Source: Cyanophora paradoxa CCMP329
Lineage: Eukaryota > Plantae > Glaucophyta
Reading direction: 5' to 3'
DNA: 64,000 nt
NCBI GenBank assembly: GCA_004431415.1
Contig: QPMI01000089.1
Span: 62,001-126,000 of the forward strand
This document shows, piece by piece, positions 33,901 through 63,877 of the stretch. Each line of letters begins with the position of its first letter. Position 1 is the stretch's first letter. The translations under genes were made by a program, and so were the position numbers. The notes beneath the pieces were generated by a model that was not told where the DNA came from, searched no databases, and was given only the letters and a program-made list of their open reading frames with translations.

Positions 33901-36900
33901 TCCTTACCTGCCCTGTCCCTCCCCCCGACCTCCCCTCGCCCTCCCCCGGCCTTGTCCCCTTTGGCACGCCGCCGGGCAGCGTTTGCTTGGACCCGCCTCG
34001 CCGACTTTGCTCTCCTTCTCGCACCCCGTCTCCTTGAATTTTCTATTATTTTCCCGGCCTTCCTAGCGGCCGAATGGCATGTGCTTTCCTGTGCACTATG
34101 GCAGCTCGGGGCTGATCTCCTGCATGCACTCTATGTCTCAGATGACCCGGGCCTGGCCCCGGCTGTGCTGGCTGCACCGTTTACCCTGCCTTTCCTCCTT
34201 CTTCTAGGCCATCCTCCAGAACCCCTAGAATTTATTTCGATAGTGACCGTTTCTGCTTTAGCAGGCCACGCCCTACAAACTGCTCTAGACACTATATCCC
34301 CCCGTGGCCCCTTAAAGAAAGCCCCGTACCCACACTACTCCCCCAAGCTCCTCACCATCATCGCCGCCCTCTTGTGGCACATTCAACCTGCTGCTGCGAA
34401 TCCCGTCCTGCACCTTCCCCTCATCCCCCTTCTACCCATGGCCAGTCCCCTTCTCATTGCTCTTGGAGCTATCGCTGCCCTCCTTGCTTGCGGCCGCACG
34501 CAAATGCGGGGGCCCTCGAGCATGACCACTCCGACGTCTACTGGTTGGATCGACGGACAGGGTCTAACCACCTGCCGGGGCCCCAGCTGCATCACGCCTC
34601 GCATGCCACATGTGCCGCCGGGCCCCAACCCCCCGCGCGCCTTGCCTCCCACTGCGCCATGCGACCTGCAGGACGTCGTCGGCCCTCCCACCGCCCCGCG
34701 CTGCGCCCGTGCTAACGGACCCGGACCTGAGATGAGGCCGCCGCCGAGCCCCCGCGCGCCGCCCGCCTCGCCCCAGCTCGCGCCGCTAGACCTGCGGGAC
34801 GCTGTCGGCCCCCCTGCTGCCCCGCGCTGCGCCCGAACTGACGGACCTGGGCCGGAAGTGAAGCCGCCGCCGTGCCCCAGCGCGCCGCCCGCCTCGCCCC
34901 AGCTTGCGCCGCTAGACCTGCGGGACGCTGTCGGCCCTCCCGCCGCCCCGCGCTGCGCCCGAGCTGACGGACCTGGCCGGAAGTGACGCCGCCACCGAGC
35001 CCCCGCGCGCCGCCGCCTCGCCCCAGCTCGCGCCGCTAGACCTGCGGGACGCTGTCGACCCCCCTGCTGCCCGCGCTGCGCCCGAGCTGACGGACCTGGG
35101 CCGGAAGTGACGCCGCCACCGAGCCCTCGCGCACCGCCCGCCTCGCCCCAGCTCGCGCCGCTAGACCTGCGGGACGCTGTCGGCCTCACCGCCGCCCCGC
35201 GCTGCGCCCGTGCTGACGGACCTGGGCCGGAAGTGAAGCCGCCGCCGCGCCCTCGCGCGCCGCCCGCCTCGCCCCAGCTCGCGCCGCTAGACCTGCGGGA
35301 CGCTATCGGCCCTCCCGCCGCCCCGCGCTGCGCCCGAGCTGACGGACCTGGGCCGGAAGTGACGCCGCCACCGAGCCCCCGCGCGCCGCCCGCCTCGCCC
35401 CAGCTCGCGCCGCTAGACCTGCGGGACGATGTCGGCCCTCCCGCCGCCCCGCGCTGCGCCCGTGCTGACGGACCTGGGCCGGAAGTGAAGCCGCCGCCGC
35501 GCCCCGCGCGCCGCCCGCCTCGCCCCAGCTCGCGCCGCTAGACCTGCGGGACGCTATCGGCCCTCCCGCCGCCCCGCGCTGCGCCCGAGCTGACGGACCT
35601 GGGCCGGAAGTGAAGCCGTCGCCGTGCCCCCGTGCGCCACCCGCCTCGCCCCAGCTCGCGCCGCTAGACCTGCGGGACGCTGTCGGCCCTCCCGCCGCCC
35701 CGCGCTGCGCCCGAGCTGACGGACCTGGGCCGTGCCCCCGTGCGCCACCCGCCTCGCCCCAGCTCGCGCCGCTAGACCTGCGGGACGCTGTCGGCCCCCC
35801 CGCCGCCCCGCGCTGCGCCCGAGCTGACGGACCTGGGCCGGAAGTGAAGCCGCCGCCGAGCCCCCGCGCGCCGCCCGCCTCGCCCCAGCTCGCGCCGCTA
35901 GACCTGCGGGACGCTATCGGCCCTCCCGCCGCCCCGCGCTGCGCCCGAGCTGACGGACCTGGGCCGGAAGTGACGCCGCCACCGAGCCCCCGCGCGCCGC
36001 CCGCCTCGCCCCAGCTCGCGCCGCTAGACCTGCGGGACGATGTCGGCCCCTCCGCCGCCCCGCGCTGCGCCCGAGCTGACGGACCTGGGCCGGAAGTGAA
36101 GCCGCCGCCGTGCCCCAGCGCGCCGCCCGCCTCGCCCCAGCTCGCGCCGCTAGACCTGCGAGACGCTGTCGGCCCTCCCGCCGCCCCGCGCTGCGCCCGA
36201 GCTGACGGACCTGGGCCGGAAGTGAAGCCGTCGCCGAGCCCCCGCGCGCCGCCCGCCTCGCCCCAGCTCGCGCCGCTAGACCTGCGGGACGCTGTCGGCC
36301 CCCCTGCTGCCCCGCGCTGCGCCCGAGCTGACGGACCTGGGCCGGAAGTGACGCCGCCACCGAGCCCCCGCGCACCGCCCGCCTCGCCCCAGCTCGCGCC
36401 GCTAGACCTGCGGGACGCTGTCGGCCTCACCGCCGCCCCGCGCTGCGCCCGATTTGACGGGCCTGGACCTGAAGACAAGCCGCCGCCGAGCCCTCGCTCG
36501 CCGCCCGCCTCGCCCCAGCTCGCGCCGCTAGACCTGCCGGACGCTGTCGGCCTCACTGCCGCCCCGCGCTGCGCCCGATTTGACGGGCCTGGACCTGAAG
36601 ACAAGCCGCCGCCGGGCCCCGCGCGCCGCCCGCCTCGCCCCAGCTCGCGCCGCTAGATCTGCGGGACGCTGTCGGCCCCCTGCTGCCCGCGCTGCGCCCG
36701 AGCTGACGGACCTGGGCCGGAAGTGAAGCCGCCGCCGTGCCCCAGCGCGCCGCCCGCCTCGCCCCAGCTCGCGCCGCTAGACCTGCGGGACGCTGTCGGC
36801 CCTCCCGCCGCCCCGCGCTGCGCCCGAGCTGACGGACCTGGGCCGGAAGTGACGCCGCCACCGAGCCCCCGCGCGCCACCCGCCTCGCCCCAGCTCGCGC

Positions 36901-37742
36901 CGCTAGACCTGCGGGACGATGTCGGCCCCCCCGCCGCCCCGCGCTGCGCCCGAGCTGACGGACCTGGGCCGGAAGTGAAGCCGCCGCCGAGCCCCCGTGC
37001 GCCACCCGCCTCGCCCCAGCTCGCGCCGCTAGACCTGCGGGACGCTGTCGGCCCTCCCGCCGCCCCGCGCTGCGCCCGAGCTGACGGACCTGGGCCGGAA
37101 GTGAAGCCGCCGCCGTGCCCCCGTGCGCCACCCGCCTCGCCCCAGCTCGCGCCGCTAGACCTGCGGGACGCTGTCGACCCCCCTGCTGCCCCGCGCTGCG
37201 CCCGAGCTGACGGACCTGGGCCGGAAGTGACGCCGCCACCGAGCCCTCGCGCACCGCCCGCCTCGCCCCAGCTCGCGCCGCTAGACCTGCGGGACGCTGT
37301 CGGCCTCACCGCCGCCCCGCCCTGCGCCCGATTTGACGGACCTGGGCCGGAAGTGACGCCGCCACCGAGCCCCCGCGCACCGCCCGCCTCGCCCCAGCTC
37401 GCGCCGCTAGACCTGCGGGACGCTGTCGGCCTCACCGCCGCCCGGCGCCGCACCCGCGCTTACGGACCCGGACCCGCAGTGAAGCCGCCGCCGGGCCCCG
37501 CGCGCCGCCCGTCTCGCCTCCGCCCGCGCCGGCACCACGCGACCTGCAAGACACTATCAGCCTTTCCGCCGCCCGGCCCCGCGCCCGTGCTGACGGACCC
37601 GGACCTGACGCGAAGCCGCCGCCGGTCCTCAGCGCGCCGCCCGTCTCGCCTCCGCCCACGCCGCGCGACCTGCAGGACGCTGTCGGCCCGGCGGCTCGGC
37701 GCCGCGCCCGAGTCGACTGTCCGATCCCTAGAGCAAACCTAA
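30991..37742 (+). CDS. Putative ORF1 of the retrotransposon: Pro/Arg-rich, hydrophobic segments, 42-aa repeat array (frameshifted)
   Basis: ATG 28 nt inside the 5' end opens a 1331-codon frame that runs into the repeat array. The same repeat peptide continues in other frames to 37742. No recognisable gag knuckle or RRM. Confidence 0.45.
34620..37700 (+). repeat. 126-bp tandem array, ~24 copies
   Basis: GCCGCTAGACCTGCGGGAC recurs at 126-bp spacing (e.g. 34786, 34912). Unit translates PPPSPRAPPASPQLAPLDLRDAVGPPAAPRCARADGPGPEVK. Confidence 0.95.
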
Positions 37743-38880
37743 GGTTGCAGAAGTGTCCCGGAGGTCCATCTGCGACGCCCCGCCCGTCGAGCGCGTCGCA
37801 AGAGGTCAATCCCAGTCGAGATGCTATTGCCGCTGCCGCGCCACGCCGCGCTGCTCGCCTCGGCATCCAGCAGGCCGCGCAAGTACTTTCACAGCTCAGT
37901 CGCCGTGTCTACATCTGGAGCACCTCCTGGACCACGGTCGCTAGACCGCGCTACGGCATGCTCCAGAACTTGATCGCTGGACTGGAGCACGGAAGCCCCA
38001 TCAGAGCCGTCGCATACTGCAGTAGCCGGTGGAGTTTCCCCTTCCGGTCGGAACGTCTCAGGGCCCGGACGACACTGCGCCTACCGGTACCCCCACCGCG
38101 TGCCGTCAAAAAACCCCAACGCGAACAGGTTTTTTTATTCATGCGATTGATGAGTCGGGCAATGATTCGAAGCGGCCCAATGCCTCCGCAAATTGGACCG
38201 CAATCCGCGAGTGCTTGACTAGCTGCACTATAGCTAGTACGTATACCGTTCCCCCTGCGTACGGCCGCGAGCCGGCGCCTGGCTGTAGCACCGGCACTGC
38301 CATTGCAGGTTACTCAGCTAGCACTGGCGCCCACGCTAGTGCTGGCCCCACCAACGCCGGCGCCTCGAGCTCGGACGCTGCGCTGCATGACGCCGAGAGT
38401 TGTCGTACGAACCACGCGTACGGATCCGGACGCGTACTAGCCATGCGTACGGCCGCGTACCTCGCAGTTAGCCCCGCGCTAGTGCCCACGTGCACGCCGG
38501 CGCTGGCCCCGCCGACGCCGGCGTCACGGACGCTGCGCCGCATGACGCCGGTCTCGAACTCCTGGGCCGGCGCCGGCCTGCGCGCCGCGCCCCACAAACC
38601 CAACGGTCCTTCAGCCGCCCGGCCCCTCTCCTCACACACCTCCTCCTCTGTGTTCTCCTCGCCGCCCTTGTCCCCGTCGCCCTTGCGGACATCGAGCCCA
38701 GCACAGCAACGGCCGCCGCAGTCGCTACCGCCGCCGCCGCCCTCTCCTCTCCGCCACTAGTCACGGCGGCCTCGTCCCTTCTAACATTATACCTCCCTCT
38801 CTGTACACCGCTGACCGTATTGACGCTCGCCACCACCGTGATGCGCTCCAGATCCCTGTCCTAGCACACCCCCGGACGCG

Positions 38881-40896
38881 GCAAATGCGAAGCTGAACCT
38901 CCGCGCCCTCACGTGGAATATTCGCCGCTTGGAGGGGAAGGCGAGCGGCAACAATATTGCAACTAAATTTATCAGCGCAATTGACTATGGCCGCCGTGAC
39001 TGGGACTGCCACTTCGTTGCTCTTCAAGAGGTCGACATGGTCCCTACCGACCGCCCCCCCTCGAAGCCCTTTCCGCCCAATATCCGCGATCACCTGATTA
39101 AGACAGCAGTCCGCCGCCATAAATCTAGCTACCTTGTCTATTCTCCTCCATCCGCGGCCCGCCCTGGCACCGCTGGCTCCGCGCTATGGATCTCAGCAAG
39201 CTATGCAGCGCACCGCCAGGCGGATTATGCGTTTGACGGCCGAGTAGCCGGCGCCCGATTTGACTTCCCGCGCACGCGCGAGCGCCTCATTGTCCTCTCA
39301 CTCTACGTGCCGGACTGCGGGCACGACAATTTGCAAAAAGAGCTCCACGACCTCACCGAATACCTGACCGCGAAGGTCGCACCCGACATCCACGAACCTG
39401 ACTGGCAGACGCATCTCCTGGTACTCGGCGATATGAATAGCACCTACTCTCCGTGCAACGACCGGATCACCGGGGGCAACCGGCGCACTGAAACTACCCC
39501 CCCGAACTCCTACGCAGAAATATGGACCCTTTTCCGCGAGACCTGGGGTCTTTATGATACCGGAACCCCGGGCGATTTCACACATGTTTCCCGCCACGCC
39601 GACTTTCTTGACGATCAGGGCCACCGCCCCCTCCTGGACGCCGCCCGCATCGACTACGCCCTTGCCTCCCCCACTCTCGCGGCCCGATCACTAGGGACTC
39701 GCACGCTTTATGTCCCTGGCCGACCGTCCCCTTTACTCACAGCCGACCATCTCCCCGTACTTGCGACCTTCAAAACCGAAGGCGTGCTCTCTGCCCCCCC
39801 TACGGAGCCCCGCCAGCCCCGACCCCAGCCTCTCCCTCCTCTCTTCAACTATGCCGCCCAACCTGCACCCATCCGGCTTGCTTTCAAGCTCGCTGTCGAA
39901 ACTTTTCTCAATAAACACGGCCAGCGGTATATCCAGCTCCTTCTCACTCCCGAGAGCAGCCCCGACTACGCCCAACGCGCCACGAAATCCCACCGCTCCC
40001 TCCTCTGTGCTATCGCCCAAAGTATCAAGTCCGTCGCCCACTCCCAAGAATTCTCTACTGCTAAAGTCCTCCAACACCGCGTAGCTGCCCAGGGAGATAT
40101 GGCTAAGTTCAACCATCTATCTGCACTGGACGCTGACGACGAACAACTCGTTGGCCGCGTTGGACAGGCCTTACACGACTGGGCGCACCAAGGCTCCACA
40201 GACCACCCGCCTGACGAAACTATCCGGGCCGTCCTCCGGGACCTTCCCAAAGACGTGACGGACATCCGAAAAGCTGCGGGCTCGGACACCACACTGACAT
40301 TCTGCCCCTCCCTCCTCGCTTTCCCCGACCCTCCCAATTACCCTGAATTCGAGAATGGTACCATTACAGGCTCTGAAATCGCCGAGTACCATACTCAACT
40401 AAGTACATGGCACTTACAGGCGCGGGCCGCCCTGGACAATCATCGCCGTGCATATACCGAAGCCGACATTGCTCGCAATATTGACACCCGCCGCCACCTC
40501 CTGTCCCACTGTCGAAGTATGGGTCGGGCTATTCAACTCCTCCTCTCCCGCTTCCGATCCGCCCCCCGCCTATACCTTACCCGCACGGCAGCGGGGCTAC
40601 CCGAAGTGCTCACTGATCCCAATGAAATTAAACGCGCACATCTGGATCACTTCAAAAATTTCTGGCGACTCCGCAAGGCTGCCCCAAACCTGGATGCCAT
40701 AGCTACGAAATTCGCGGACATTGAAAACGGCGCCTGGTTGGGCAGATTTTGGAAACGCCAGTACCGACCCCTTTCCCACTTCACCCCCGCCGTCTGGGAC
40801 GGACTAATGGCCATGCCAGAGGACCCCGAACTCGATCGCCTCATCTCGTCCCTGTCCAATGGTGCAGGCGGTCCTCCGGCCTCACGAACGGAATGA
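38881..40896 (+). CDS. Retrotransposon ORF2 part 1: apurinic-like endonuclease (APE) and linker
   Basis: LTWNIR, LQEVD, SLYVP, LGDMNS, ARIDY, TADHLPV. Frameshift at ~40870 joins it to the RT frame (GAGG/SSGLTNGMIK). Confidence 0.92.
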   Translation, partial: ANAKLNLRALTWNIRRLEGKASGNNIATKFISAIDYGRRDWDCHFVALQEVDMVPTDRPPSKPFPPNIRDHLIKTAVRRHKSSYLVYSPPSAARPGTAGSALWISASYAAHRQADYAFDGRVAGARFDFPRTRERLIVLSLYVPDCGHDNLQKELHDLTEYLTAKVAPDIHEPDWQTHLLVLGDMNSTYSPCNDRITGGNRRTETTPPNSYAEIWTLFRETWGLYDTGTPGDFTHVSRHADFLDDQGHRPLLDAARIDYALASPTLAARSLGTRTLYVPGRPSPLLTADHLPVLATFKTEGVLSAPPTEPRQPRPQPLPPLFNYAAQPAPIRLAFKLAVETFLNKHGQRYIQLLLTPESSPDYAQRATKSHRSLLCAIAQSIKSVAHSQEFSTAKVLQHRVAAQGDMAKFNHLSALDADDEQLVGRVGQALHDWAHQGSTDHPPDETIRAVLRDLPKDVTDIRKAAGSDTTLTFCPSLLAFPDPPNYPEFENGTITGSEIAEYHTQLSTWHLQARAALDNHRRAYTEADIARNIDTRRHLLSHCRSMGRAIQLLLSRFRSAPRLYLTRTAAGLPEVLTDPNEIKRAHLDHFKNFWRLRKAAPNLDAIATKFADIENGAWLGRFWKRQYRPLSHFTPAVWDGLMAMPEDPELDRLISSLSNGAGGPPASRTE

Positions 40897-43800
40897 TTAA
40901 AATGCTCTGGTCCCCCCTCCGCCTCTCCAAGACGGAACGCCAGGCCTTAGCCGCCTCACACTCTACCGACGAGATAAACAGCTTCGAGTCCGCGGCTCAC
41001 TGGACCACCTCGCGCGACGCCATCCGAGCTCTAGTTCAATCCACTCTTCTCGGCCACGTGCCCGACCACGCACTTCGCGGTCAAGTCTACGCTATCCCGA
41101 AACGTGATAATTCAGCAGATCTTGCCGATCTCCGCCCCATCACCCTTCAAGAAGTCACCTGGAAGCTGGTCACGGGCCTCCTGACCCACCGCATGGAAGA
41201 CCGCATTGATACACATAACATACTACGCGGCCGCAACTATGGTTTTTGTCGCCGCGAATCTACCGACCCTGTTCTCTACGCCCTCCGATCCTCCCTCGAG
41301 GACGCGCACCAGTTCAAAAAGCCAATCTTCGGCGGCCTGGGGGATATTGCCAGCGCCTACGACAGTGTCTCCTGGCATAGCCAAGAGCTCAGCCTTAATC
41401 GTATCCAACTCCACCTCCATCCTGAAGGAAAACGCTATATAGCCCTCCACAAAAAAGCAGCTCAACACCGCACGGCGTGCATCCTTACCCCCCACGGCCG
41501 CACGGACTATTTTCAAGTCCCCTGTGGCCTCCCCCAAGGAGGCATCGAAGCCCCTCTCCACTGGCGCATTTTCTTCGACGCCGCTCTCACCGCCATAGAA
41601 GAACGAGCGACTCAGTCCAATTTCGGCTACCAGCTCGGGCCGCACCGATCTGACCCTACCCGCCCCCGTTCCCCCCGCCCACCATGTCCTGGCGAACCCC
41701 TCTACTTCCCCGCCGGTCCCTGCCCCACAGTCTCTGTGCTCGCATACGCCGATGACACCACCATGCTTGCCAGCTCGGCTCAGGGTCTCCAACATATGCT
41801 TGACTGGTTGTCCGAATTTCTCCATATCCATGGCATGAACCTGAACGCCAAAAAGACGGAAATTTTCCACTGGAAACCCCCCCGATCCGAAGCGCCAGTC
41901 AAGAGCAAATACTATGTCGGCGTCGGCGATTCCAGAGCTGAGGTTGGCCACATCCTCTCCCCCACAACACCATTCCGCGTCCTCGGCGTCCAGTTTACTG
42001 CGACCCTGTCTTGGACCCACCAAGTCCGTCTACTCAAGTCCCAGCTCCAGTCCGCAATCTCCGTCTTAGCCACAAAGAAGATTACCGTCCACGAATTCCA
42101 AGTGATACTACATCGGGTTCTCTTCCCCAAACTGGCATACCCTCTCCGCATCATGACCTTAACGCCATCCCAATGCCAATCCCTCGACGCTGTCTGGCTC
42201 ACCGCGGCCAAACACACGGCCAACCTGGCCCAGTCCGTTTCCACGGCTGCCTTCTCTTCCATCTATCGCCTTCCCTCAATAGCTGTCATCCAACGCCAAC
42301 AGCAGTGCGTCGACGAGCGCCTCCGCCAGGAACTAGCCTCTCACACATCATCACTCTACGGCCAAATATACCGACAACGTGTCCTCGACACCCAGGCCCG
42401 ATACGGGCTTCCCCTTCTCCCACACGAATATCCGAACCTCCCCTCGGGGCCCCTCACACTACAGAAAAATATTACGCTTGCCATCACGGCAGACCTGACC
42501 TCCACCTCCCATCACATCCTCACAACGTGCGACTCCTGGACACATGGCCTCCCCTCCCGCCGCTCCCATCTTCGACGAGAATATATTATATCAACGCAAT
42601 TGTCGCCCCTCACCCTCCAACAAGCCGGTCAGCGACTCTATCGCTGCGGCCTCCTCACAATCCGCGACATCACGGCCCCTGACGGCTCCCTTGCCGAATG
42701 GTCCCTCCTCTGGAGTCACGGCCGTGTCCCGGCATACTACAAACGTGCCCCCTCCTGGTGGGACGCTGTCCGCGAAGAACTCTCTCTTCCCCGCCCCTCC
42801 ACCCGGTCCCCTTTCCTCCCCCGCCACCCTATGCCTCCGCCGCCCTCTATCCCAGACATTCGTCGCTCTCTCCAAGCTAATGCCGTCCTTGCAGGACTCA
42901 ACATTGGTGACTTTGTCTGGACATCCCAAGGCCTGGTCGGCCGCGTCGTGGGGAAACCCCCTATCCCAGACGAAAACCCGGACGAACTAGCTTCGGAGGA
43001 CTCCGATGCGGATCCTAACTGCCCCCGAGATTCAGAGTATAACTATGGGGTGGAACTCGTCCATTACTGCCTCACCCCATATGATGGCTTCTCCATGCGC
43101 GACCCCGGTCTATCGGCGCTTGAGCTCGACCCCGCCTGGCGTGAACGCAGACTGGAATTCCAATTTTGCCCTCACCCAAAATACTGCGGCTCTGAACAGC
43201 TTCATCGCGAGCTGGGCCTCTCTACGACTGCTTGTCGATGGGTCGAGTACGCATCTCACGTCCGCCGAATCCCGGCAGGCTCGTCGTGCGAATCGAAGGG
43301 CTGGTCTCCGAGCCTCTCCAATCTCAATAGGCCGGTGCCCACCCGCTCCCGGCAGCTGCCCGACTCCACCTCCGCCTTCACATGCTCCCACTCTAGAGGA
43401 CAGCAGCCCTCCCGTGCTCAACCCACACGAGCAGCTAAAAAAGCCCGCCTTGACCCCTCCTCAGCTACCCCTCCTGCTCAATATGACCCCGAACTCCCCC
43501 CTCCCAACCTCCCCCGCGAAATCACACACATTGGCTTCATCGACCTCTGGCTCCGGGAAACTGACTGGTGGGACTCTTTCCGAGCGGAGGCCCAGGCTAC
43601 CAATGTTGCCCTCGAGAGACGCCCACGCCTTATGACCCCCGCATCACAAGCCGACCGCGACTTCTATGAATCCCCGGCCGGGCTCGACTTCCTTTTCATT
43701 ACCTCCCGAGCCCTTTTCGCAGAGCTCTGCCCTACACTCCGCGCACTAAACTCCCCGCCCCTTCCCTCCGGACCTACTCCCCGGGTAATATACACGGACG

Positions 43801-45190
43801 CCAGCACACAAAAACAGGGCTCCGCCTCCGTCCGAACCACTTACGCCGGCCTTGCACCCCTCGAAAATAATCCCGACCTGCCTGACAAAATCGAGTTCGC
43901 CCACCGTCTCCCCGGCGTCCAACACAACGTGAACCTGGGAGAGCTAGCAGGCACAATCTCCGCAGCATTCACGTATTTCGGGCCCACGGGCGGGAAAATT
44001 ATCACGGACAGTCAGAACACTATCCGAGCCCTGACAGCCTTCGCCTTTCAAGACCCTTCATCTTTCTCCCATCCCATCAACTTCCGCACCCTGCTCCGCC
44101 GAGAAGACGGGGCCCTCCTCCTCAACGCTCGAACGCAATACGCCATTCGTATCGCCCAAGACCCGAACTTCCAAGTCACGCTTCAGTGGGTCCCCTCTCA
44201 CCAACCAAAGACCATCCCGCGGCCACCTGCAACGGCTCCAACACCAACGACGACCCGCCGCCCGGCCCCCTCTTCCCCCCGCCGACCCCGTGTCCCCCTC
44301 AGCGGACCAGCTGCCCCCCTACCTACCGCCCCGCAGACGTTCTCTGCCTCGGCTCCCTACCACTATATTGGCGGAATGGACATCCCCGATGCCCGACTCC
44401 TTTTTTCGGACGACTCCTCCCCACCCCTCCCCCCGTCCCTATTCTCGTCCCTCTTCCCGCCTCGCCGGCACATTCGCACATATATTCTAGCTGACAGCCC
44501 CGCCGACTACCATTTCCTCCGATGCCAAGCGGACCTCGTTGACTATGTAGACGCCTCTGAGACTACCAACACCCACCTGGTCCTCGACCTCGTCCCCCTC
44601 GCGTCCGCCAGACTTGAACGCGCCTTCACGGCGGCGGAAACCGTCATCTGGAACCGCTGCATCCGACTTCCCAAGGATCATGCTCTCTTCCCCTCCGACG
44701 AACACCTGACCATTGTCTCGGACTGCGACATCCTCCGCGCCTACTCCGCTTTCCTTGAAGCCTTAGGACGCAGAGACATCACTCACAGCATCTCCTTCCA
44801 GTGCTGCTCCCCTCCCAACCCAATCTTCCTTCAACCACTCCCCGAGGACGCCCCTGATGTTGACTACCCTGATCCCGGGCCTACAAGGAAACTCGCCCTC
44901 GACTATTACTTAGCCCATCCTAGGGGTTCCGGCCCCACCTGGCATTTCTACCCCACTTCCCTCTGCAAACCCGCTGTCCCCGCCGACCGTGACACGCCTT
45001 TCCCCGCCTGGTACTGGGACGAGGATCTTACACTCGCCCCCACCTCCCAGACCGAGGCTGGCACCCCTCTGGTCGCGTACCACCGTTGCGACCCTGGCAT
45101 GTGGGGCGTTCCTATTTCCTCCCTGATCGCAGAACAATGGGCACGGGGACCCGCCCTGTCCTGCCCGCACTGCCACCCACCCCCCCCCCC
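40870..45190 (+). CDS. Retrotransposon ORF2 part 2: reverse transcriptase, N-terminal part of RNase H, unknown inserted domain
   Basis: LRPITLQE, NYGF, DIASAYDSV, GLPQGG, LAYADDT, RVLGV. RNase H YTDAS (~43790), GELAG, TDSQN, WVPSH (44187-44201). Confidence 0.95.
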
Positions 45191-47300
45191 CCTGGCCCCC
45201 ACCCACGTTCCCTTTCCGCGACCAAACCGGCGCCCTTCCTGTTTTATTCGAACGCTATGGACGCCGAGCCATCCCCTACTCAGCTGCCATCGACCCTGAC
45301 GGCCCCAGGTATGATCGCCGAGTACTTCCCCTCCTCGACGGCATAAAATCTCGCCTGGCTGCCCTTAAAGCGGCCCCCCTCTCCCTCATCGACCCCAACC
45401 CCCGGTCTGGGGCCCACCTGGCCACACCCGTTCTCCTCGCACAACCCATACCTGCAGAACCCGTCGACGCTTTCTTCAGACTTCTCCAAAACCGACAAGT
45501 CTCCTTCCGCCTTCATGCCCCGACCACCCCCAAGTGCCTCTTCCTCTCGTCCTCCCACGCAACCTCGATCCTCATGGGCACAGCCCCCACTGCCCTCTCT
45601 CTCAAAGCCCGCGCAGGCCAGCCACACCTGGACCGACCCTACGTCCCGCACCCTTTCTCCCCAACGGAATACGATTATATTCTCCTCCCCCTGCCCCCCT
45701 CTGGGTCCCGACCCTGGCGACTAGCAATCATCTCGGCCCGCCTCCGCGAAATCCGCATCCTGGACGTCACCCGCAAACCCGCCTCCGACGTCACGGCCCC
45801 TCTTAAAGACTGGGTCATCAGCTGGTGGACGGCGACTCTCCGCCCCGGCGACCCCTCCCCACGCTCGGCCTGGAAGTACGACACCAGCACCTTCCCCACA
45901 CAAGCCTGGAAAAACGTCCACACGGGTGAAGACGCTCTCTTCGTCATGACTGCTGCTGAGTTCATTGGCCGCGGTGAGGAAGTCCACCTGTATGGCAAAG
46001 GACGGGGCCGCCCTATCCCCTTCCACGCCCCCATCTACCGGGAGCGTTGGGCGGCCGCTCTCCTTCTCCGGGACCCTGAGGTTCTCCTGGGGACAGTCCA
46101 GGCTAACGACCCGGCATTCACAACAAAACGACAGCGCATGACCCCGCGCACCAGCTCCCGCCCCTCCCAGCACACGGCAGCCAAAGCCCGCCGTCCGGTC
46201 AGACGCAAGCGAGACCCCACCCCTCCTCCCTTCCGTCCTCCCCTCTCCCCCCCGTCCCTTACACCGGTAACCCCCCGGTCCCCCAATTCCCCTCCCTCCT
46301 CCCCGCAGCCCCCCACCCCCCCCCACCCTGCCCTTCCCCACCCCCACGCCCCCGGCGCCCGAGGCCCGACCAACTACTTCCCCAGGCCGAACCCCCGCTC
46401 ACCCGACTGAATTTCCCCTCCCTCGCCCCCTGACGCTGGCGGAGAAAAGTTGGCTGGGAATGCCTTCCGGTTTGCAGACAATGATTACTGCGCGGAGCAA
46501 ACTCTCATGTCGAAACCCCCCTCCCACCCGCCCCCCGACATGACCCTCATCGCCACTCCCTCATTCGACGAGGCGACCTTATCCACCTCCGGCCGCATGC
46601 CGCCCTCAGCCTCCCCCTTGTGGAAGCCTTCCTTGACATGCTCTCCTCCCGTGAAGCCGCCCTGGCCTCGCCTCACCCTGCCTACTTCCTGTCGTCCAGC
46701 TCCTATCCCGCTAGTGCAGCCTCCCAATTTGACTCTCGGGGCTCTGCCCTTCTCCCCCTGCACCAATACCTTCCCCCCGGACGCCTTCTCGATGCCCGCC
46801 TTGTCCTTGTCCCCATCCTTACCTATCGCCCCACTCATCATACCCCACCAGCCCCCTCGCCGACCCTTCCCTCAGGCAGATCCCGGCACCCTCAGGGCCC
46901 CCCGGGACACTGGCACCTACTCGCTTTATTTCCTCAGACGCGCTCGTTCTACATTCACAACGGCTCCCTCGACGTCCCTGATCACCTTGTCTCCTTTGCA
47001 CAAGACTTGGCCGCCACTTGGAGTCACCGCGACTCTGGTTCCCCCCTCCCCCTCACTCCATTCTGCAGATGGACCTATTTACGCCCGGAGACATCCCTCT
47101 CCGTTCTCCAGCCCCCCAACAGCACGGCCTGCGGCCCTCTCCTCCTCCTCACAGCTGACCTACTCAGTCGCTCCTCAGCACTTGCCCCGTCGGACTTGCC
47201 CCGCCCCCCAGCCTACATTCAGATCGACAATGCAACGCTCCGCAGATACCGTGAATATATTGCCCTCAGCCTCTGCTACGGGTCCGTCACCCTTGACCCT
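45190..47300 (+). CDS. Retrotransposon ORF2 part 3: two tandem Ulp1/C48-like peptidase domains (first degenerate, second with catalytic residues)
   Basis: Domain 1: VDAFFRLL..KCLFLSS..YDYILLPL..PWRLAII..IRILD..PTQ..EDALFVMTAAE. Domain 2: VEAFLDML..AYFLSS..LVLVPI..GHWHLLAL..IHNGS..QPPNSTACG. Confidence 0.7.
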
Positions 47301-47769
47301 ATATGCTGTGGTCCTGCCCTCCCGGCCCTCAGACCCCCACCGACCTTCCCGGGGCGTCCCCACCCGCCACGCCGCCCCCCGGTCTCCACTGGCGGCACCC
47401 TGCCTACCCTAGACTCCCCACCATCCTCCCCCGACCACCCAGCCCTCCCGCGCTCCCCAACTGTGCTTGAGTCTACCCCGCCTCGCCCTGCAGGGCCCGC
47501 CACCCCCCTCCCTCCCGGTGCTCGCTACGCCCAAGAACTCGCCTCTCAGCTCGCTGACCTGGCCCGCAACGAAGCTTCCGCAACAGCACGCCGTCTCTTC
47601 CGGCCGTCCCACGTGACCCCACTCGAGGCGGCGACCATCCTAGCTGAAGCCGCTCACCGCGACGCCGCCCAGCCGCCACCACGGTCCGCCAAAACATCTA
47701 AAACGGTCGCAAAGAAAGAGGCGGCCCGGACCCCGGCCAAGAACCGTATCCCGAACCCAGCATATACTC

Positions 47770-50267
47770 CTGACAACTGCCACAATGACGCCGTTGACAA
47801 GCTTGCCAAAACGACCCCAGACGCCCCCCTCTCAGCCCTTCTCTTCATTCCCCACAGTTTCAAATGCTTCCTCATCCGCGTCGGCCTCCCGCCCCCGTCA
47901 TCCCAAGGCCCAGTTCCAGGAGCCGAGCCCTACAGAGGCAGACTCCATGCATACCGCGTTGAGGGGGACCCCCGCTCTCACTTCCTAGCCGAAGCCTCCC
48001 TCTCCAATACCTCGACTGGCGCCAGCTTCGCAACGCGGGGGCCGTCCTCAGCAATCCTCACGTTACCCTCGCCCCAGCCCTCTCCCTCGTGTCCGACAAG
48101 CCACCGGACCGCCGTACCCCCACAGGCGATCACCTCCGCAAAGTCAGATTCCAATGCATTCTTGGAGGCCTCCCCTCCCTCACCATCCGCCTCCTCCACG
48201 ACCCCGACCTATACGGCCCTCTCTTTCCTGACGGTATCGCCCACTGCCCCTTCTGTCACCTCCCTCCCACCCCTGCCCCAGTCCCCGAGGACCCTGCTTC
48301 CCCACCCCCACCCTCCCCGCCCCCTGCCACGTTCACCCCCCCGGGCTCCCCCCCGCCCTCTTCCCCACCGAGGGCCGCAGACCCCAGACAGCCCGACCCC
48401 ACAACCCACCCCCCCGAAGACTTCATTCACATATTTACTTGCCCCGCCGCTCGCCTCCTCCTCCAAGCTCTCCAGGACGCACTCGTGACCTTCCTCCGCA
48501 CCCGGGTTCTCCGCCACTCGCCCAAACCCTTAGGACACGACGATACTATTTTTCAACTCTTTCCCTTCCTCCGCCTCGTCTCCCCTGACCCCGCCTCTCC
48601 CCTCCAATCCGCCCTCCTCTCCCCCACTGAAAATCCGGCCCTTTTCCGCCCCCCAGGTCTCACCGATACCCTATGGACAAAGCTTAGCCCGGCCTTGGCT
48701 GACCTGCTCCCCTTCCCCGCCCCTGCCCTCCTGCGCCTCGGTACCCCGGCAGGATTGCCCGCCCTCTGCACAGCCCTGGGCATTAACAAGACCACCACAA
48801 TGTCAATCCAAAAAGATTTAGCGCTACTCCTCGACCAACACCTCCGTGCGATCTGGAGGGACCGCTGCGCCCGCAACCACGCCTGGGAGCTCCGACAAGG
48901 CATCACTGACAGAACCAAACGTCGATACCGCAAACATGCCGACACCAAACCCTCCCGCTCGCCGCCAGTACAGCCGCCTGGTCCCCCCCTCCCCCCCCGC
49001 CCCCCCCGCCCCCTCCCTCCATGATACTATCTCCATCACTGACTTCTGCTGCGGATTGGACTCGGAAAGCCAACCATGGGTTCTCCTGGAAAATTTCCGC
49101 CAGGCAATTGCACGACTCCCTGCCTCCCCCTCGCCCCAGACCGCCCCCTCCCCCCAGGCCCCCCCCTCCCCCCAGCCGCCCAATACCAGCACCGTAGCCA
49201 TGACATCTGACTTCTCTTGTACCTGTGGCACCCGATTTGCCTCCGCAGCTGCCCTCCAGGCCCACTCCGACGCCAGACGGGGAAAGTGCCCCGCTCGCCC
49301 TGAGACCACCTCATACTCTAGATCTGCCTCCCAACCTGCTGCACCCCCAACGCAACCTTCTCACAAGAACCCCGACAATGGCACCCTGCCCGCTTTGCTC
49401 ACGGGCCCTACGTCCGCTACTCAACCTTCCAAGCGCCCCGCCCTAACGCCCCCCCTGGCCCCTCCCTCGAAACGAACTCGCCCGTCGCCTGCCTCACGCA
49501 AACGGACAACCGATACTCCCCCCGCCCCGGCACCCAAACGCCCGCGCCCCATGACCCCTCCCCTTCCCGCCTCTTCACCCGCCCCACCCGTACCTACGGC
49601 GAAAAGAAAGGCAGCCGGTCGCAAGACCCCCAAGCGCGGAACCAAAAAAGCGCGAACGGTGTCGATACCCGCTGGACAACTCACAATCACGTCCCTCTTC
49701 GCACCTGGAGTGTACAAACCACTAACGACGCTTCCAGTAGCCGACTCTCCCCCCCCCTCCTCGCTTCAGCCGGCCCCCCCGACCGAGACCCCGCACGAGG
49801 CCGCCCCGCCGCCCCCTACGGTCCCTCCCCCGGCCCCAACCGACTCACAAGTGTCGAACCCCTCGTTGACTCCGGCCACCCCCATGGCTTCGGCCCCCCC
49901 ACTGGCTTCGGCCCCCCCCTCGGCTTCGGCCACCCCATCGGCTTCGGCCCCCCCCCCGGCTTCGGCCACCCCATCGGCCTCGGCCACCCCTCTGGCCTCG
50001 GCCACCCCCCCTACTCAGACCGACCCCTCCCGACCCCTCGCGACCCGCCTCGTCTCCGCACTCCCCGCTCTCTGCGCCGCCTGTCAGTGCCCACGCTCAC
50101 TCCACTCTGCCGTCCCGGCACCGCTCCCTGCCCTGCCCCGCATCCGCTGCCCACCCCCTCCCGCTGCCGCCGCCCACTCCCTCTCCTTCCTCATATCTTC
50201 CTCCTACCACCTTCTTCACCTCGACAGAACGGGACACCGATTAATCGGGGTCCTGGGGCGCAGGTGA
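47770..50267 (+). CDS. Retrotransposon ORF2 part 4: RNase H C-terminal helix, CCHC finger, extra Zn fingers, NLS-like and PIP-box-like motifs
   Basis: HNDAVDKLAK (~47780-47810), CPFCH...EDFIHIFTCP, IWRDRCARNHAWE, CTCGTRFASAAALQAH..C, KRKAAGRKTPKR, QLTITSLF, CAACQCPRSLH. Frameshifts at ~48000-48090 and ~49010. Confidence 0.8.
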
Positions 50268-52047
50268 GGAGGAGGGAGGAGGCAGAGTGAGGAGGAGGAG
50301 GGGTGGCGGAGCGGCGGCAAGGGAGGGCGGCGGACTGCGAGACATTTCACTTCCAGGGCTCATGAGGGATGGAGGAGTTGATCAAGGGGTGGGCGCGCGG
50401 GCCTGGTTACGGCTATCACCGAAAACCATGGCTCCCCCACTCAGGCGAACCTCCCATATTGAGCGACCCATGGCCGGCACCTTGCTAGCGTCTTCGGCTA
50501 GACAGATGACCGGTCGGAAGGGCACGTCACGTAGAACATTGATACATGTGCCGTGGTGTATCAATGCGACGTCCACTTTTGCAAAAAAAAAGAGAGGTTT
50601 AGATTATAGTGCGCCTTCTCGGAGGCCCTAGCTTACTAGGCATAGCGCTAGCTACAGCTGCAGCTCACTTCGCTGCCCACCTCTGGTTTCTATTCTCGTC
50701 CCTGGGTAGTCACTCCCTTTCCCGCGTAGGATCTTTCCTGTGCTGCAGCTCTAGACTTAGTCCCCGGGGTAGCATCGCCAGTTACTTCCACATCCGAGCT
50801 CCACCCGGTCCGATGTCCGAAAGGCTTAGTCCCGTAGGCTCATCTCTCGACTTGACACAGATGGACACCTCAGTTACATCTCTAGCCATTTGTCTCGGTG
50901 TGTGCGAATTCATTTATAGGCTATCTGTGTGCAAGAGGGGGGGTACAGATGCAAGCAGCAAGCGAAATCCCCAATAGTCAGCTGGCTGTAAAACTAAGAG
51001 CTCGAGCAGCTCGAAAGCGAGCAGAACTCGAAAAGAATACTCTGCAGCAGAAAGCGAGTGAGTTCCAATCGCTGAAAGGAAGGTTTGTGTGCCGTCACGG
51101 CGTGATGTGCCGCGCAGTGCATATGCATGTGCATTGAACTTTAAACTTGAAGCTTAAGCTTTGTACGTACGACCGAATGGCAGGCCTGGGCAGCACGTAT
51201 TCCGAAAAGTTCATTTCGTACCGGCGGCACGTACTAGTACTCCCGCGGCGCGCAGCTGCAGCGGGGCCGAGCGGGGCCGAGCCTCGGAGTTCTAGCTATA
51301 GCCGCTGCCGCACGCGAGAGCTATGAGGCCCTTAGGGAGAGCGAACTTCGGAAGCTAGCGGGGAGAGCGGGTGAAGTCGCGGAGATCTAGCTATAGAGGC
51401 CGCCGGTTGCGAGCGACAACCAAGTGATTCACGTGTGGGCGCCGGGCGAGCGAGCTGCTGCGAGAGCTGCACTTGCAGATTCCGGTGCTACGCTCTGGAG
51501 CACGGATCCGCAGCGAGACAGCCCCCCGAGATGCACGGATCCGAAGCGAGCATGCGCACCGACGTGGCTGATCATGACGGGCGCGGCAGGGTCGCGGAAG
51601 AATGCCCCGCGCGCAGCATGGCCATGGCCGCGCAAAAGGCAGGTGTTGATCCGAATGCGTACCCCCCTAGATCCCACCTTCTCGATTTGACCCGACTCGG
51701 CCGCTCTTCAAATACTAGATGGCAGCCTCCCCATCGCGAGGATGACTGCAAGTAACACGGCGTGGCTGTGCCGGGGGGTGAGGATGGGCGTTGTAATCGG
51801 GTTCCGGAAGGGTTGTGACAAGCGCGCACACGCCCATCCGCCGCGCTCTTTTGCGGTATGGCTTTGTACGAATGTATACACGCAGTTTTCTTCTACTGGC
51901 CTCAGCCAGCTGCAGCTGCAGCCGCCCGGTCAATATCATGATCATGAGGTGCTTAAGCTTGCAACTGCGCTTCGTGCCTCGAGCTCGAGGCCTAGGTCCA
52001 AAGATAGGAGGCACACAGCCTCGTGCTCGAGCCTTATATAATTATAG

Positions 52048-53294: not shown

Positions 53295-55100
53295 CTACGG
53301 GCGGCGCCAGGCGGAGTGGCGCTCGACAGTCCCCAGCACGTCGTCCTTCCGCACCGGCCTGCCGCGGCGGCCGGGTCAGAGGCAGGCCCGCAGGCTCAAG
53401 GGTCCGTTTTTTTTGCAAAAGTGGACGTCGCATTGATACACCACGGCACATGTATCAATGTTCTACGTGACGTGCCCTTCCGACCGGTCATCTATCTAGC
53501 CGAGGGTGCTAGCTAGGTGCCGGCCATGGGTCGCTCAATATGGGAGGTTCGCCTGAGTGGGGGAGCCATGGTTTTCGGTGATAGCCGTAACCAGACCCAC
53601 GCGCCCACCCCTTGATCAACTCCTCCATCCCTCATGAGCCCTGGAAGTGAAATGTCTCGCAGTCCGCCGCCCTCCCTTGCCGCCGCTTCGCCACGCCTCC
53701 TCCTCCCCACTCCGCCTCCTCCCTCCTCCTCACCTGCGCCCCAGGACCCCGATTAATCGGTGTCCCGTTTTGTCGAGGTGAAGAAGGTGGTAGGAGGAAG
53801 ATATGAGGAAGGAGAGGGAGTGGGCGGAGGCAGCAGCTTGGGGCGGGCAGCGGATGCGGGGCAAGGCAGGGAGGGGTGCCGGGACAGCAGTGTGGAGTGA
53901 GCGTGGGCATTGGCAGGCGGCGCAGAGAGCTGGGAGTGCGGAGACGAGGCGGGCCGCGAGGGGTCGGGAGGGGTCGACCGGGTTAGAGGGGGGGGCCGAG
54001 GCCAGGGGGGCGGCCGAAGCCATGGGGTTGGCCGAAGCCAGGGGGGTGGCCGAAGCCGATGGGGTGGCCGAAGCCAAAGGGGGGGCCGAGGCCATTGGGG
54101 GGGCCGAAGCCATAGGGGTGGCCGGAGCCAGCGGGGGGTCTGACACTTGAGGGCCGGTTGGGGTCGGGGGGGAGACCGTAGGGGGCCGAGGGGCAGCGTC
54201 TTGCGAGGTCCCGAGCGGGGGGGTCAGCTGAAGCGAGGGGGGGGAGGGGGAGTTGGCTGCTTGCAGCGTCGTAAGTGGTTTGTACACTCCAGGTGCAAAG
54301 AGGGACGTGATTGTGGGTTGCCCCGTGGGTATCGGCACCGTTCGCGCTTTTTTGGTCATGCGCCTGGGAGTCTTGCGGCCGGTTGCCTTTCTTTTTACCG
54401 TAGGTACGGGCCGGGCGGGTGTAGAGGCGGGAGGGGGAGGGGTCGCGGGGCGCGGGCATTTGGATGCCGGGGCGGAGGGGGTATCGGCTGTCCGTTTACG
54501 TGAGGCAGGCGACGGGCGTGTTCGTTTCGGGGGAGGGGCCAGGGGGGGCCCCGGGGCGGGGCGTTTGGAAGGTTGGGTAGTGTTCGTAGAACCCGCGGGC
54601 GAAGCGGGCAGGCTGCCAGTGTCGGAGTTCTCGTGTGACTGTCGTGCTGGGGGTACCGCAGGTGGGGAGGCAGGGCAGGAGGTGATCTCAGGGCGGGCGG
54701 GGCATTTTCCCCGTCTGGCGTCGGAGTGGGCCTGGAGGGCAGATGCAGAGGCGAATCGAGTGCCGCAGGTGCAGGAGAAGTCAGACGTCCCGGCGGCGGA
54801 TCCTGCATCGGGCAGCGGAGGGGAGGGGGGGGCCTGGGGTGAGGGGGCGACGGGGAGTCGTGCAATTGCTTGGCGCAGGCTCAAGGGTCCGGGCCCGGGC
54901 CCTGGGGCCGGTCGAGAGGGGACGGGGGCGAGGTGGGAGGCCGGGGAGGCCTAGGGTCCCCCTACATTCTTTTAACCGCTCTAAACCTCGCGGGCCGGGG
55001 CGGGGGCGGGGCCGGGGGCGCGCTTGACGAGGACGGCGTTCATACCGGCCTCGAGGCACCGCCGCAGGCTTGCCTCCATCGCGTTCGCCGTCAGTGCCTG
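53295..55100 (-). pseudogene. 3'-terminal fragment of a response-regulator receiver (hybrid histidine kinase type) gene; intron holds the truncated LINE
   Basis: Exon ALTANAMEASLRRCLEAGMNAVLVK (~55025-55098) splices to PVRKDDVLGTVERHSAWRRP* (~53367-53295), restoring the conserved KP. Upstream exons are absent. Confidence 0.75.
53407..54875 (-). mobile_element. 5'-truncated copy (~1.47 kb) of a diverged member of the giant retrotransposon family
   Basis: Reverse-complement homolog of ~49097-50590 with poly(T) at 53407. TSD (CG)CAGGCTCAAGGGTCCG at 53389-53406 and 54874-54891. Confidence 0.93.
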
Positions 55101-55109
55101 AGGCGCTCG

Positions 55110-56143
55110 GAGCGCCGGCGCCCGCGGCTCGAAGGCCGCCGGGGCGGGCGGCGCCTCCTCGCGAGCTCCCAGTGCCCCGCGCACCTCTCGTACTGGACGG
55201 GCGCCCCCCTCGCGGCCGCCGCGCTCGCCCCCCTCGTCCTCCTCGCCCTGCCAGGCTGGCGCCCTTCGTCCGCGTCGCCATCGAGCCGCTCGCCCGAGCT
55301 GGGGCCCGGGTCGGTGCCGGTGAGGGCGCAAGCAGTCTCCTGATCATGAGCGAGGTTTGTTTGCCCCCCAGACCGCCCTTCCTTCGCTTACGCGCCCCTG
55401 ACCCCGCAGGACTCGCGGCTGCCCGCGGGGCACCCGCCGGTGAAGGCGGACCGGGGCGATCGCGAGTGCCCCTACAGCGGGAAGCAGGGCGCGCCCCGGC
55501 GGGCGTCGACTTTGAACTGCCCCGTGCACCTCTCCTTCTGGCTGCAGCGCCCTCTCCTCTCCGCTGCCGCCACCGCCGGCTCGCTCTCTTCGCCCGCGCC
55601 GTCCACACGGCCTGGCCCCGGCCCCGGCCCGCCCCGAAGCCCCTCAATGTCCAGGGCTGACGGACTCGTTTCGAATTCGTCCGCGTAGACTCTTGATCAT
55701 GATTTATTTTTAGTCTTATCTTTTCTCTTATAATTATCGCTTACTTTCAATCGTCTTCTTAGCTACATCGAGGCATCTAGCTGTAGTCTCTAGGTCTGAG
55801 CCTCTCGCTTCTCAAAAGTTGACAGGCGGTTGAAGCTTGAAGTACTTGTACCCCTGGTTTCGGTCGAATTTCCGAGCGAGTCTGAAGGTGACGTCGACTG
55901 ACTCGGGTGCACCCGAATCAGCACGCACTAGTGAGCTTCGCAGCGGGCCCCGACCAGTACTTCGAATGGCCGCGCGGCCGGCGTTTACAGCGCTCGCGTT
56001 CTCTCCGCCCGCAAACCCGGCGGGCTCTCCGGCCCCCCCCCCCCATCCGCCCCCGCGGACGGGATGTTCCACCTGATCGACACCGTGGCGCGCCGGACGT
56101 GGCGGAGGCGGCGCTGGGGCACCTCGAGGGCGCCGCGCGGCTC
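55110..56143 (+). pseudogene. Inverted duplicate of ~14322-15320 (heme oxygenase 3' end, intergenic DNA, EXD1-like 5' end)
   Basis: Contains QCPAHLSYWTG, LPAGHPPVKAD, WPRPRPAPKPLNVQG*, the shared intergenic sequence and FHLIDT..AEAALGHLEGAARL, with indels. Confidence 0.88.
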
Positions 56144-59872: not shown

Positions 59873-60202
59873 CACACATATAAAAACAAATATTATTATC
59901 CCTCGCGTTCCGCTCAGGATAATAATATTTGTTTTTATATGTGTGTTACTATAAGTTATATAAAGATATTAGCATTTTTATCATAGTGTATATCGATATC
60001 TGATATGTATTTTATCGGTAGTTCGTAAACGAATCAATAAAAAATAATATATGTATCGTGAAATCTTTGTAAATTATGTATATAAAAATATGTAGTCGCG
60101 ATATAGCCGATATGTGTTTACGATGCGCGATGTGTATCTAAAATAATTACAATGTGCTGCTTGGGACGCGCCACATATAGTCATGTGTATCATCTATGTA
60201 GC

Positions 60203-60795: not shown

Positions 60796-61069
60796 TACTT
60801 ATCGATACACCTCACTTATTTCAATGTACAAACTCTAATTAAATAGATAGTAAATATGTATAGAAATAACGAGATTGTAGTATAGGGTGGGGTGTAGGGT
60901 GGGGGCAAAATGCAAACTGAATCAGTGCGATATAATTTAGTGAACACGAAGTGGATACGAAGTGGATACGAAGTGGATACGAAGGGGATAAGTGCGCCCC
61001 GCCCACTATGCAAGATACATGCCTTTCTTATGCATGATCTATGAAAAATAACAATAAACCCATCTCTCT

Positions 61070-61333: not shown

Positions 61334-61342
61334 TCTTTTACT

Positions 61343-62365: not shown

Positions 62366-62386
62366 CTTTTGATTGTTCTTTACTTA

Positions 62387-63849: not shown

Positions 63850-63877
63850 TATTTCTCTATTAAGGCATTCTACAAAA

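Follow-up and report, generated by a model that had tools for sequence, protein, structure and literature searches.

Overview of the locus

The window is a stretch of 64,000 nucleotides from the glaucophyte alga Cyanophora paradoxa CCMP329 (contig QPMI01000089.1, positions 62,001 to 126,000, forward strand). It contains, at 38875-50591 on the + strand, what is probably a frameshifted, dead copy of a long interspersed nuclear element (LINE) of the apurinic/apyrimidinic endonuclease (APE) type. The element would encode a single polyprotein with a nested-domain layout. Its RNase H appears to be interrupted right after the catalytic His, in the flexible beta5/alpha-E loop, by a three-domain module of about 1,170 to 1,190 residues. 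We give this reading, the element and the interruption taken together, a probability of about 0.78. The features are listed in Table 1.

The coding part of the LINE extends from about 38875 to the stop codon at 50265-50267 on the + strand, and an A9 run lies at 50583-50591. Pfam searches of the open reading frames (ORFs) of the window detected the APE endonuclease, the reverse transcriptase (RT), and the RNase H. APE and RT lie on the sense strand in one polyprotein, the 3' end is A-rich, and a 5'-truncated copy is present. The A9 tail and the 5'-truncated inverted copy are typical of LINEs.

The truncated copy belongs to the same LINE family and contains its 3' 1.4 kb. It is inverted (53407-54849, - strand) and is 84 to 90% identical to 49142-50590. 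It shares an 18-bp-period low-complexity repeat found at 49873-50011.

Compared with P0001, an intact relative described below, the window copy has at least five breaks in its frame and is a pseudogene. It was analyzed unrepaired, without a joined or consensus protein, and P0001 served as the reference. The coding path is in frame 1 at 38875-40902, in frame 0 from 40875 to about 45190, in frame 1 at 45217-46203, in frame 0 at 46617-48041, in frame 2 at 47963-48907, and in frame 0 again up to 50264. The switch at the C13 run could be a slippage mutation or an assembly indel.

Table 1. Features of the LINE copy in the window (positions of the window; residue numbers are those of the intact relative P0001 unless another protein is named)
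Positions	Strand	Feature	Evidence
38875-40902	+	APE endonuclease region, frame 1	tblastn of P0001 residues 2-668, 41-42% identity; Pfam Exo_endo_phos, E value 2.4e-4
~40876-40894	+	Break between the APE frame and the RT frame	Stop codon at 40894
41094-41996	+	Reverse transcriptase; YADD at 41745-41756	Pfam RVT_1, E value 8.4e-19, window ORF residues 116-416
43785-44201	+	RNase H core, beta1 to beta5 and catalytic His (Asp in YTDAS, Glu in GELAG, Asp in TDSQN, His in WVPSH)	Pfam RNase_H; motifs; 43% identity to 1600-1770, all four residues kept
44202-44330	+	QPKTIP, a conserved neck (44202-44219), followed by the first Pro-rich linker of the insert	SHQPKTIP identity; 1758-1806
44331-45195	+	Cys/His domain of unknown fold: AWYWDEDL 45006, AYHRC 45075, CPHCH 45162 (C-x-x-C-H)	35-39% identity to 1800-2105 (block ~1810-2095)
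45180-45192	+	C13 homopolymer, switch from frame 0 to frame 1	
45340-46130	+	C48-fold domain 1, frame 1, catalytically dead as judged from its residues	45-47% identity to 2150-2392
46131-46649	+	Pro-rich linker with an extra stop codon in frame 1 (46408), a C9 run (46316-46324), and the return to frame 0	
46650-47330	+	Putative C48-like domain 2, frame 0: GHWHL 46905-46919 with the His; IHNGSLD 46953-46973 with Asn in place of the Asp; QPPNSTACG 47109-47135 with the Gln and the Cys	41% identity to 2540-2760
47385-47399	+	S-T-G-G-T	Counterpart at 2789-2793
47400-47750	+	Pro-rich, then charged linker that closes the insert	
47751-47810	+	PNPAYT, a conserved neck (47751-47768), followed by NDAVDKLAK, the likely alpha-E helix of the RNase H, which contains the last catalytic Asp	
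47811-48041	+	Conserved segment after alpha-E: EPYRG 47925, AYRVEGDPR 47949; frame 0 to frame 2 within 47963-48041	Alignment to P0001
48242-48445	+	CCHC zinc-knuckle-like motif, frame 2: HCPFCH 48242-48259, HIFTCP 48428-48445	Aligned to 3082-3141 and to P0004 1371-1395
48446-50267	+	C-terminal region (AIWRDRC 48848), Pro/Ala-rich low-complexity tail, and stop codon; one further frame change, 2 to 0	
50268-50591	+	3' untranslated region up to the A9 run at the element's 3' end	Similarity to the inverted truncated copy stops at 50590

The probable interruption of the RNase H

The window contains five RNase H motifs, all in frame 0: YTDAS (43791-43805), GELAG (43938-43952), TDSQN (44004-44018), WVPSH (44187-44201), and NDAVDKLAK (47784-47810). 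The catalytic residues follow the canonical order of Asp, Glu, Asp, (His), and Asp, as they do in P0001 (D1629, E1677, D1698, H1757, and D2933). The candidate alpha-E helix does not directly follow the His loop in either element. In the window, the His of WVPSH and NDAVDKLAK are 1,194 codons apart in the same frame. In P0001, the distance is 1,171 residues.

Pfam RNase_H matched the isolated window core (43785-44204) with an E value of 1.7e-5 over profile positions 5 to 123 of 141. The match therefore ends at the His, and the last helix is absent from it. A relaxed alpha-E motif (N-D/E-x-hydrophobic-D-x-L/I/M-A-K/R) has a single occurrence in the six-frame translation of the 64-kb window. When the residues of the downstream coding sequence were shuffled 20,000 times, the motif arose in 2 shuffles. 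Because the motif is unique and rare in shuffles, we take the observation to be real and not due to chance.

A preliminary description of this DNA had placed the five motifs in order, with HNDAVDKLAK about 3.6 kb downstream, and they are found at those places, all in one frame. It had also called the gap between them coding on the same strand. The gap is indeed coding on the + strand but is not one open frame. It passes from frame 0 to frame 1 at the C13 run, contains the stop at 46408, and is in frame 0 again from about 46617.

An intact relative

Window 46485-48485 was used as the query of an exhaustive HMMER search. Among 1.84 billion representative proteins, it retrieved two matches. One of them, P0002, is a 107-amino-acid predicted protein of C. 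paradoxa; over its first 43 residues, about 93% of positions match window 48158-48290. The other is P0001 (E value of 4.8e-47). It contains 3,720 amino acids in a single ORF that fills an 11.9-kb contig of a metagenome assembly from the European Nucleotide Archive. It encodes, in order, APE, RT, an RNase H core ending in WVASH, an insert of 1,171 amino acids, NDQVDKLAK, and a CCHC knuckle. Its RNase H motifs are WHDAST at 1627, GEVAA, LDSKS, WVASH at 1753-1757, and NDQVDKLAK at 2929-2937. All five RNase H catalytic residues are kept in both P0001 and the window.

P0001 is colinear with the window element over its full length and is about 40% identical to it. APE was 42% identical, the stretch that spans RT and the first insert domain 48%, domain 1 45%, the stretch that spans domain 2 and alpha-E 37%, and the surroundings of the zinc knuckle 46%. 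The whole insert aligns colinearly at 35 to 47% identity, similar to the RT region (48%). It is thus about as conserved as the RT, which argues that it is under constraint. DNA similarity between the two was found only in the RT region (66%), so they represent diverged families and not copies of one element.

Both borders of the insert are conserved. SHQPKTIP, at the catalytic His, is identical in the window and P0001. At the other border, P-N-P-A-Y-T-x-x-N-x-x-N-D-x-V-D-K-L-A-K forms an island of identity within a poorly conserved linker.

Domains of the insert

The insert contains three conserved blocks separated by Pro-rich segments (P0001 1758-1806, 2066-2138, 2410-2498, and 2748-2856). 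The Pro-rich linkers around an unknown domain and two C48-like domains that had been described are therefore present. The description of those two domains as tandem Ulp1-like proteases stands in part. There are two C48-like domains, one recognized by its fold and the other by motifs and a subthreshold Pfam match, but the first lacks His and Cys, so that the pair appears to be one dead and one live domain.

The Cys/His domain had no match in Pfam or in the Protein Data Bank (PDB) by sequence and profile searches. Its AlphaFold2 (AF2) model was unusable, with a predicted local distance difference test score (pLDDT) of 35.

Domain 1 was shown by modeling to have the CE-clan (C48) fold. In the AF2 model of P0001 domains 1 and 2 together, the core of domain 1 had a pLDDT of 55 to 82. 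The top 50 Foldseek matches to the domain 1 model were all CE-clan proteins (SENP1/2/3/5/7, Ulp1, NEDP1, and others), with a best E value of 3.4e-6. VIA-align of model residues 8-247 with SENP5, SENP2, and Ulp1 gave Z scores of 12.6 to 14.3 with 173 to 195 residues aligned. ESM language-model features gave Peptidase_C48 values of 0.95 for domain 1 and 0.93 for domain 2. At the catalytic positions of domain 1, the His is replaced by Pro in the window (RPWRLA 45709) and by Arg in P0001, and the Cys is replaced by Asp in both (GEDAL 45925 in the window). Judged from these residues, domain 1 is a conserved pseudo-protease that lacks His and Cys in both elements.

Domain 2 is a putative, live-looking C48-like protease on the basis of the active-site motifs in P0001. 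It contains H2635, D2652 (+17), Q2700, and C2706, in the order His-Asp-Gln-Cys. The 17-residue step from His to Asp and the Gln six residues before the Cys match the spacing of yeast Ulp1 (His514, Asp531, Gln574, and Cys580). By hhalign, domains 2 and 1 align in register (E value of 0.014), His to Arg and Cys to Asp. This register would fit a tandem duplication after which the first copy lost its activity. A BLASTP comparison of the two C48-like pieces returned Pro-rich noise only. Pfam searches of the window insert pieces at E values up to 10 returned no match, and PDB sequence and profile searches with the window pieces and the domain 2 profile returned chance matches only.

The S/T-G-G-T sequence contains the only Gly-Gly that is conserved between both elements in any linker of the polyprotein. 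It lies 85 residues past the Cys of domain 2 (P0001 2791; window 47391). The cleavage sites of Ulp/SENP and viral CE proteases follow Gly-Gly or Ala-Gly. S/T-G-G-T is a candidate cleavage site of the ubiquitin-like modifier (Ubl) type.

Possible roles of the protease module

Domain 2 may act in trans on proteins of the host or the element and strip them of SUMO or a different ubiquitin-like modifier at the site of reverse transcription or integration. We hold this role to be tentative, at slightly less than even odds. The dead domain 1 would be a modifier-binding or scaffolding partner. We favor action in trans on SUMO or another Ubl. Several transposon classes carry Ulp1 or OTU domains (PMC2836005, PMC4640811), and P0005, a distant relative described below, contains an OTU domain after its RNase H. 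The weight that is left by this role and by the self-processing considered next falls to a purely structural role for the module, or to none.

Self-processing of the polyprotein is doubtful. Domain 2 would act in cis and cut after the Gly-Gly of S/T-G-G-T, between itself and alpha-E, and the cut would switch the RNase H or leave it to assemble from two chains. CE-clan proteases of adenovirus, African swine fever virus (ASFV), and poxviruses act in cis, and viral processing proteases are among the CE-clan matches here (ASFV pS273R and poxvirus I7L, Z scores of 7.5 to 8.5). The sole conserved linker Gly-Gly also sits just past domain 2. However, one conserved dipeptide in two sequences is weak evidence, and a cut at this place would put the last catalytic Asp and the RNase H core on different chains. 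The region upstream of the Gly-Gly showed no ubiquitin-like fold. We know of no LINE polyprotein that requires processing, which also counts against a cut in cis.

Assignment of the distant helix

The distant NDAVDKLAK is likely the RNase H alpha-E helix. We compared it with three distant RT relatives, P0003, P0004, and P0005 (RT identity to the nearest proteins was 22 to 27%). P0003 encodes a contiguous RNase H (Pfam profile positions 4-139), in which W-I-K-G-H is followed after 5 residues by N-E-M-V-D-Q-L-A-K. In P0004, the Pfam RNase H match ends at profile position 122. It is followed by 41 charged residues and then by N-D-K-A-D-E-L-A-K-K-G-C-E-E. The continuation of this helix, K-G-C-E-E, resembles that of P0001, N-D-Q-V-D-K-L-A-K-G-C-K-E-E. 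The spacing from His to Asn at the same loop is 5 residues in P0003, 41 in P0004, and 1,171 in P0001. In this LINE group, the His loop seems to be a hot spot for insertions.

The loop insertion of P0004 (encoded at L002 1181-6106) comprises residues 1211-1253. P0005 contains about 18 residues at the same His loop (about 1846-1865) and has an OTU (Peptidase_C65) domain far downstream of the RNase H. P0003 has a Tudor domain far downstream.

When the part of P0004 from the RNase H to the C terminus was compared with the whole of P0001 by blastp, the top match was 2929-2963 (E value of 0.12) and the second was the CCHC knuckle, in colinear order. The same comparison with P0003 gave 2928-2943 and 1718-1758 as the top two matches, which are the two halves of its contiguous domain. 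An hhalign comparison of the P0001/window profile with P0004 picked the helix again (E value of 0.013). Pfam searches of isolated alpha-E segments returned no match. A profile of four helix segments searched against the PDB ranked designed pentatricopeptide repeats (PPRs) first, a repeat artifact. After these, the HIV-1 RT RNase H helix (538-551, E values of 0.25 to 0.47) dominated the single-stretch matches, among a few designed helical-repeat and other chains. These matches are weak; taken with the conserved catalytic Asp and the uniqueness of the motif, they make the alpha-E assignment likely. A global E-INS-i alignment of P0001 1600-3160 with P0003 and P0004 was discarded, as the short sequences were smeared across the insert.

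NDAVDKLAK could instead belong to the next module, before the CCHC knuckle. In that case, the RNase H would be inactive or would lack its C terminus, and the proteases would simply lie between two domains. The end of the Pfam match at profile position 123 would fit this arrangement, and no tool joined the two halves in one model. The PPR-like match would fit as well, as such short helices recur in unrelated proteins. We give it little credence. Only one such motif occurs in the six frames, shuffling seldom produced it, and both elements keep the consensus Asn and Asp of RNase H together with the other four catalytic residues. The helix is contiguous with the core in P0003 and 41 residues away from it in P0004, and the matches of these relatives map to P0001 1718-1758 and 2928-2943. 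The best nonrepeat PDB matches are the HIV RT RNase H helix.

Several results weigh against the interrupted RNase H with a live protease. The matches of the alpha-E segment to the relatives are each weak (E values of 0.01 to 1). The two-chain prediction of the RNase H core (P0001 1605-1765) with alpha-E (2905-2960), with a score of 0.00 and a partner pLDDT below 50, is evidence neither way. The RNase H core of the window scored 25.4 bits, against a Pfam gathering score of 25.8, and Pfam did not detect RNase H in the P0001 core alone. A two-sequence profile of the RNase H core retrieved chance matches and no RNase H from the PDB. P0001 domain 2 matched Pfam Peptidase_C48 (PF02902) with an E value of 0.0026 and 18.1 bits, below the cutoff of 20.7. 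The AF2 model of domain 2 had low confidence (pLDDT of about 50). The window domain 2 has Asn at the catalytic Asp position and keeps His, Gln, and Cys. P0001 is the single intact relative among the 1.84 billion representatives. Two scans of metagenome contigs, one with alpha-E and post-alpha-E patterns and one with domain 1 patterns, yielded no relatives, so the conservation rests on two sequences. Protein homologue searches with ORF residues 1000-1516 and with P0001 1680-3020 retrieved only P0001 itself.

Origin of the insert

It is very improbable that the insert is a nested mobile element or a captured host gene in this one copy, or an assembly misjoin: the reading frame of the window copy does change on either side of the insert's middle part, but the first change lies in the C13 run, the insert has no terminal inverted repeat (TIR) or target-site duplication (TSD), and P0001, a single intact ORF of a diverged family that comes from another sample, contains the same insert at the same residue. 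The flanks of the insert contained no TIR, TSD, inverted repeats, or direct repeats. We rejected the nested-element reading on the shared layout of P0001 and the missing TIR and TSD. As judged from an intact ORF with the same insertion point, the insert is a family feature and neither a nested element nor a misassembly.

The preliminary description had proposed a new architecture. The same insertion point in an intact relative at about 40% identity bears this out as an architectural feature. It had also named copies that lack the insert, and TIRs or a TSD of the insert's own, as observations that would speak against the claim. The intact P0001 contains the insert, and no TIR or TSD flanks it. 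The two elements confirm that, at the sequence level, the nested-domain architecture is real and unusual and is not damage.

Proposed mechanism

The module starts after the catalytic His with the QPKTIP neck and a Pro-rich linker. The Cys/His domain, a linker, the dead C48-fold domain, a second linker, the live-looking C48-like domain, and a last linker follow, and the PNPAYT neck closes it. After the module come the likely alpha-E helix with the last catalytic Asp and then the CCHC knuckle. The long flexible linkers and the two conserved necks may let the module loop out of the His loop. As beta5 and alpha-E adjoin in the RNase H fold, its two halves may reassemble into an active enzyme, and an RNase H could still form because all five catalytic residues are kept.

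The protease may also gate the RNase H, which we consider improbable. Domain 2 would cut at S/T-G-G-T before alpha-E or would hold SUMOylated partners at the active-site loop. If so, gating would turn RNase H activity on or off when target-primed reverse transcription reaches a particular step, and it would be a regulatory principle that is undescribed for any retroelement.

Comparison with known systems

RNase H-bearing LINEs of the APE type include the I group, plant L1, and Dualen/RandI (PMC4640811). Like these, the element encodes one polyprotein with APE, RT, a type 1 RNase H after the RT, and a Cys/His knuckle, and it has an A-rich 3' end and 5'-truncated copies. Their RNase H is contiguous, whereas here about 1,170 to 1,190 residues lie between the His and alpha-E.

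Dualen/RandI LINEs carry a Josephin-related cysteine protease, according to a passage in PMC9977147 that cites Kojima and Fujiwara 2005. As portrayed in that passage, they resemble the element in that a LINE with APE, RT, and RNase H also carries a cysteine protease of the ubiquitin system. They differ, on the same passage, in that the protease here belongs to the C48/CE clan and not to Josephin/OTU, and in that it lies inside the RNase H and is not a separate terminal domain. Elements of the Dualen/RandI clade have both APE and a restriction-like endonuclease. The preliminary description had put the Dualen protease upstream of the RT, whereas in P0005, one of the distant RT relatives, an OTU protease follows the RNase H.

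NeSL and Utopia are LINEs of the restriction-like endonuclease (RLE) type with an N-terminal Ulp1-like protease (PMC4640811). They share with the element an in-frame Ulp1-like (C48) protease in a non-LTR retrotransposon. Theirs is a single protease upstream of the RT in an RLE-type element, whereas the element here is of the APE type and has a dead and live pair nested in another domain. Its N terminus is the APE domain, and its proteases lie downstream of the RT. No RLE was found by general Pfam scans of P0001 and the window or by eye after the CCHC knuckle; no dedicated RLE profile was used.

DNA transposons such as Ginger1 and the Mutator-like elements carry Ulp1 or OTU domains, for which a role in transposition or DNA repair has been proposed (PMC2836005). 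They too are transposons with a protease of the SUMO/ubiquitin type. In contrast to the module here, their domains are terminal additions to transposases, do not lie in the active-site loop of an enzyme, and are not part of retroelements.

Among cellular proteases, the SENP/Ulp1 enzymes (such as PDB 1euv, 2io0, and 9gnx) resemble domain 1 in fold (the Z scores given above) and domain 2 in the order and spacing of His, Asp, Gln, and Cys. They differ in that identity is only 9 to 18% and in that domain 1 lacks His and Cys. A literature search retrieved no paper on a protease module nested in a retroelement RNase H and none on this glaucophyte LINE family.

Significance

To our knowledge, the RNase H domains of retroelements are treated as compact, contiguous units. 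The His loop of the RNase H appears to tolerate 5, 41, or about 1,170 residues in related LINEs, and selection appears to have kept a three-domain module there across families that are only about 40% identical. The element would offer a case from nature in which the insertion of domains into an active-site loop can be tested. The element would also extend the range of SUMO/ubiquitin-type proteases in transposons to APE-type LINEs of glaucophytes, with a conserved dead and live pair. If host SUMO conjugates are its substrate, the protease may be a countermeasure of the transposon against SUMO-dependent silencing or repair in an early-branching alga. Annotation pipelines would call such an RNase H truncated and would overlook the proteases; Pfam thresholds catch neither in the window.

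Surroundings of the element and other observations

The 3' untranslated regions of the window element (50540-50591) and of the P0001 contig, L001 (about 11780-11850), have a common purine-rich start with GAGGAGG repeats. They also contain a similar terminal motif, TGTAT-T/C-AATGC ... TGCAAA ... A-run. This motif, common to both elements, may be an RT recognition site.

About 25 copies of a GC-rich tandem repeat of 126 bp (89% matches) lie at 34491-37689, about 1.2 kb upstream of the APE start. The P0001 contig contains only 296 nucleotides ahead of its start codon, which bears on whether the tandem array belongs to the element.

Long-range inverted repeats of 82 to 100% identity pair 11730-12200 with 29575-30052 and 14383-15274 with 55162-56036. 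They are probably other dispersed repeat families in a very GC-rich region (GC content of up to 0.80 at 28 to 30 kb). The GC content falls sharply to 0.41 to 0.42 at 60001-64000, compared with 0.6 to 0.8 elsewhere in the window.

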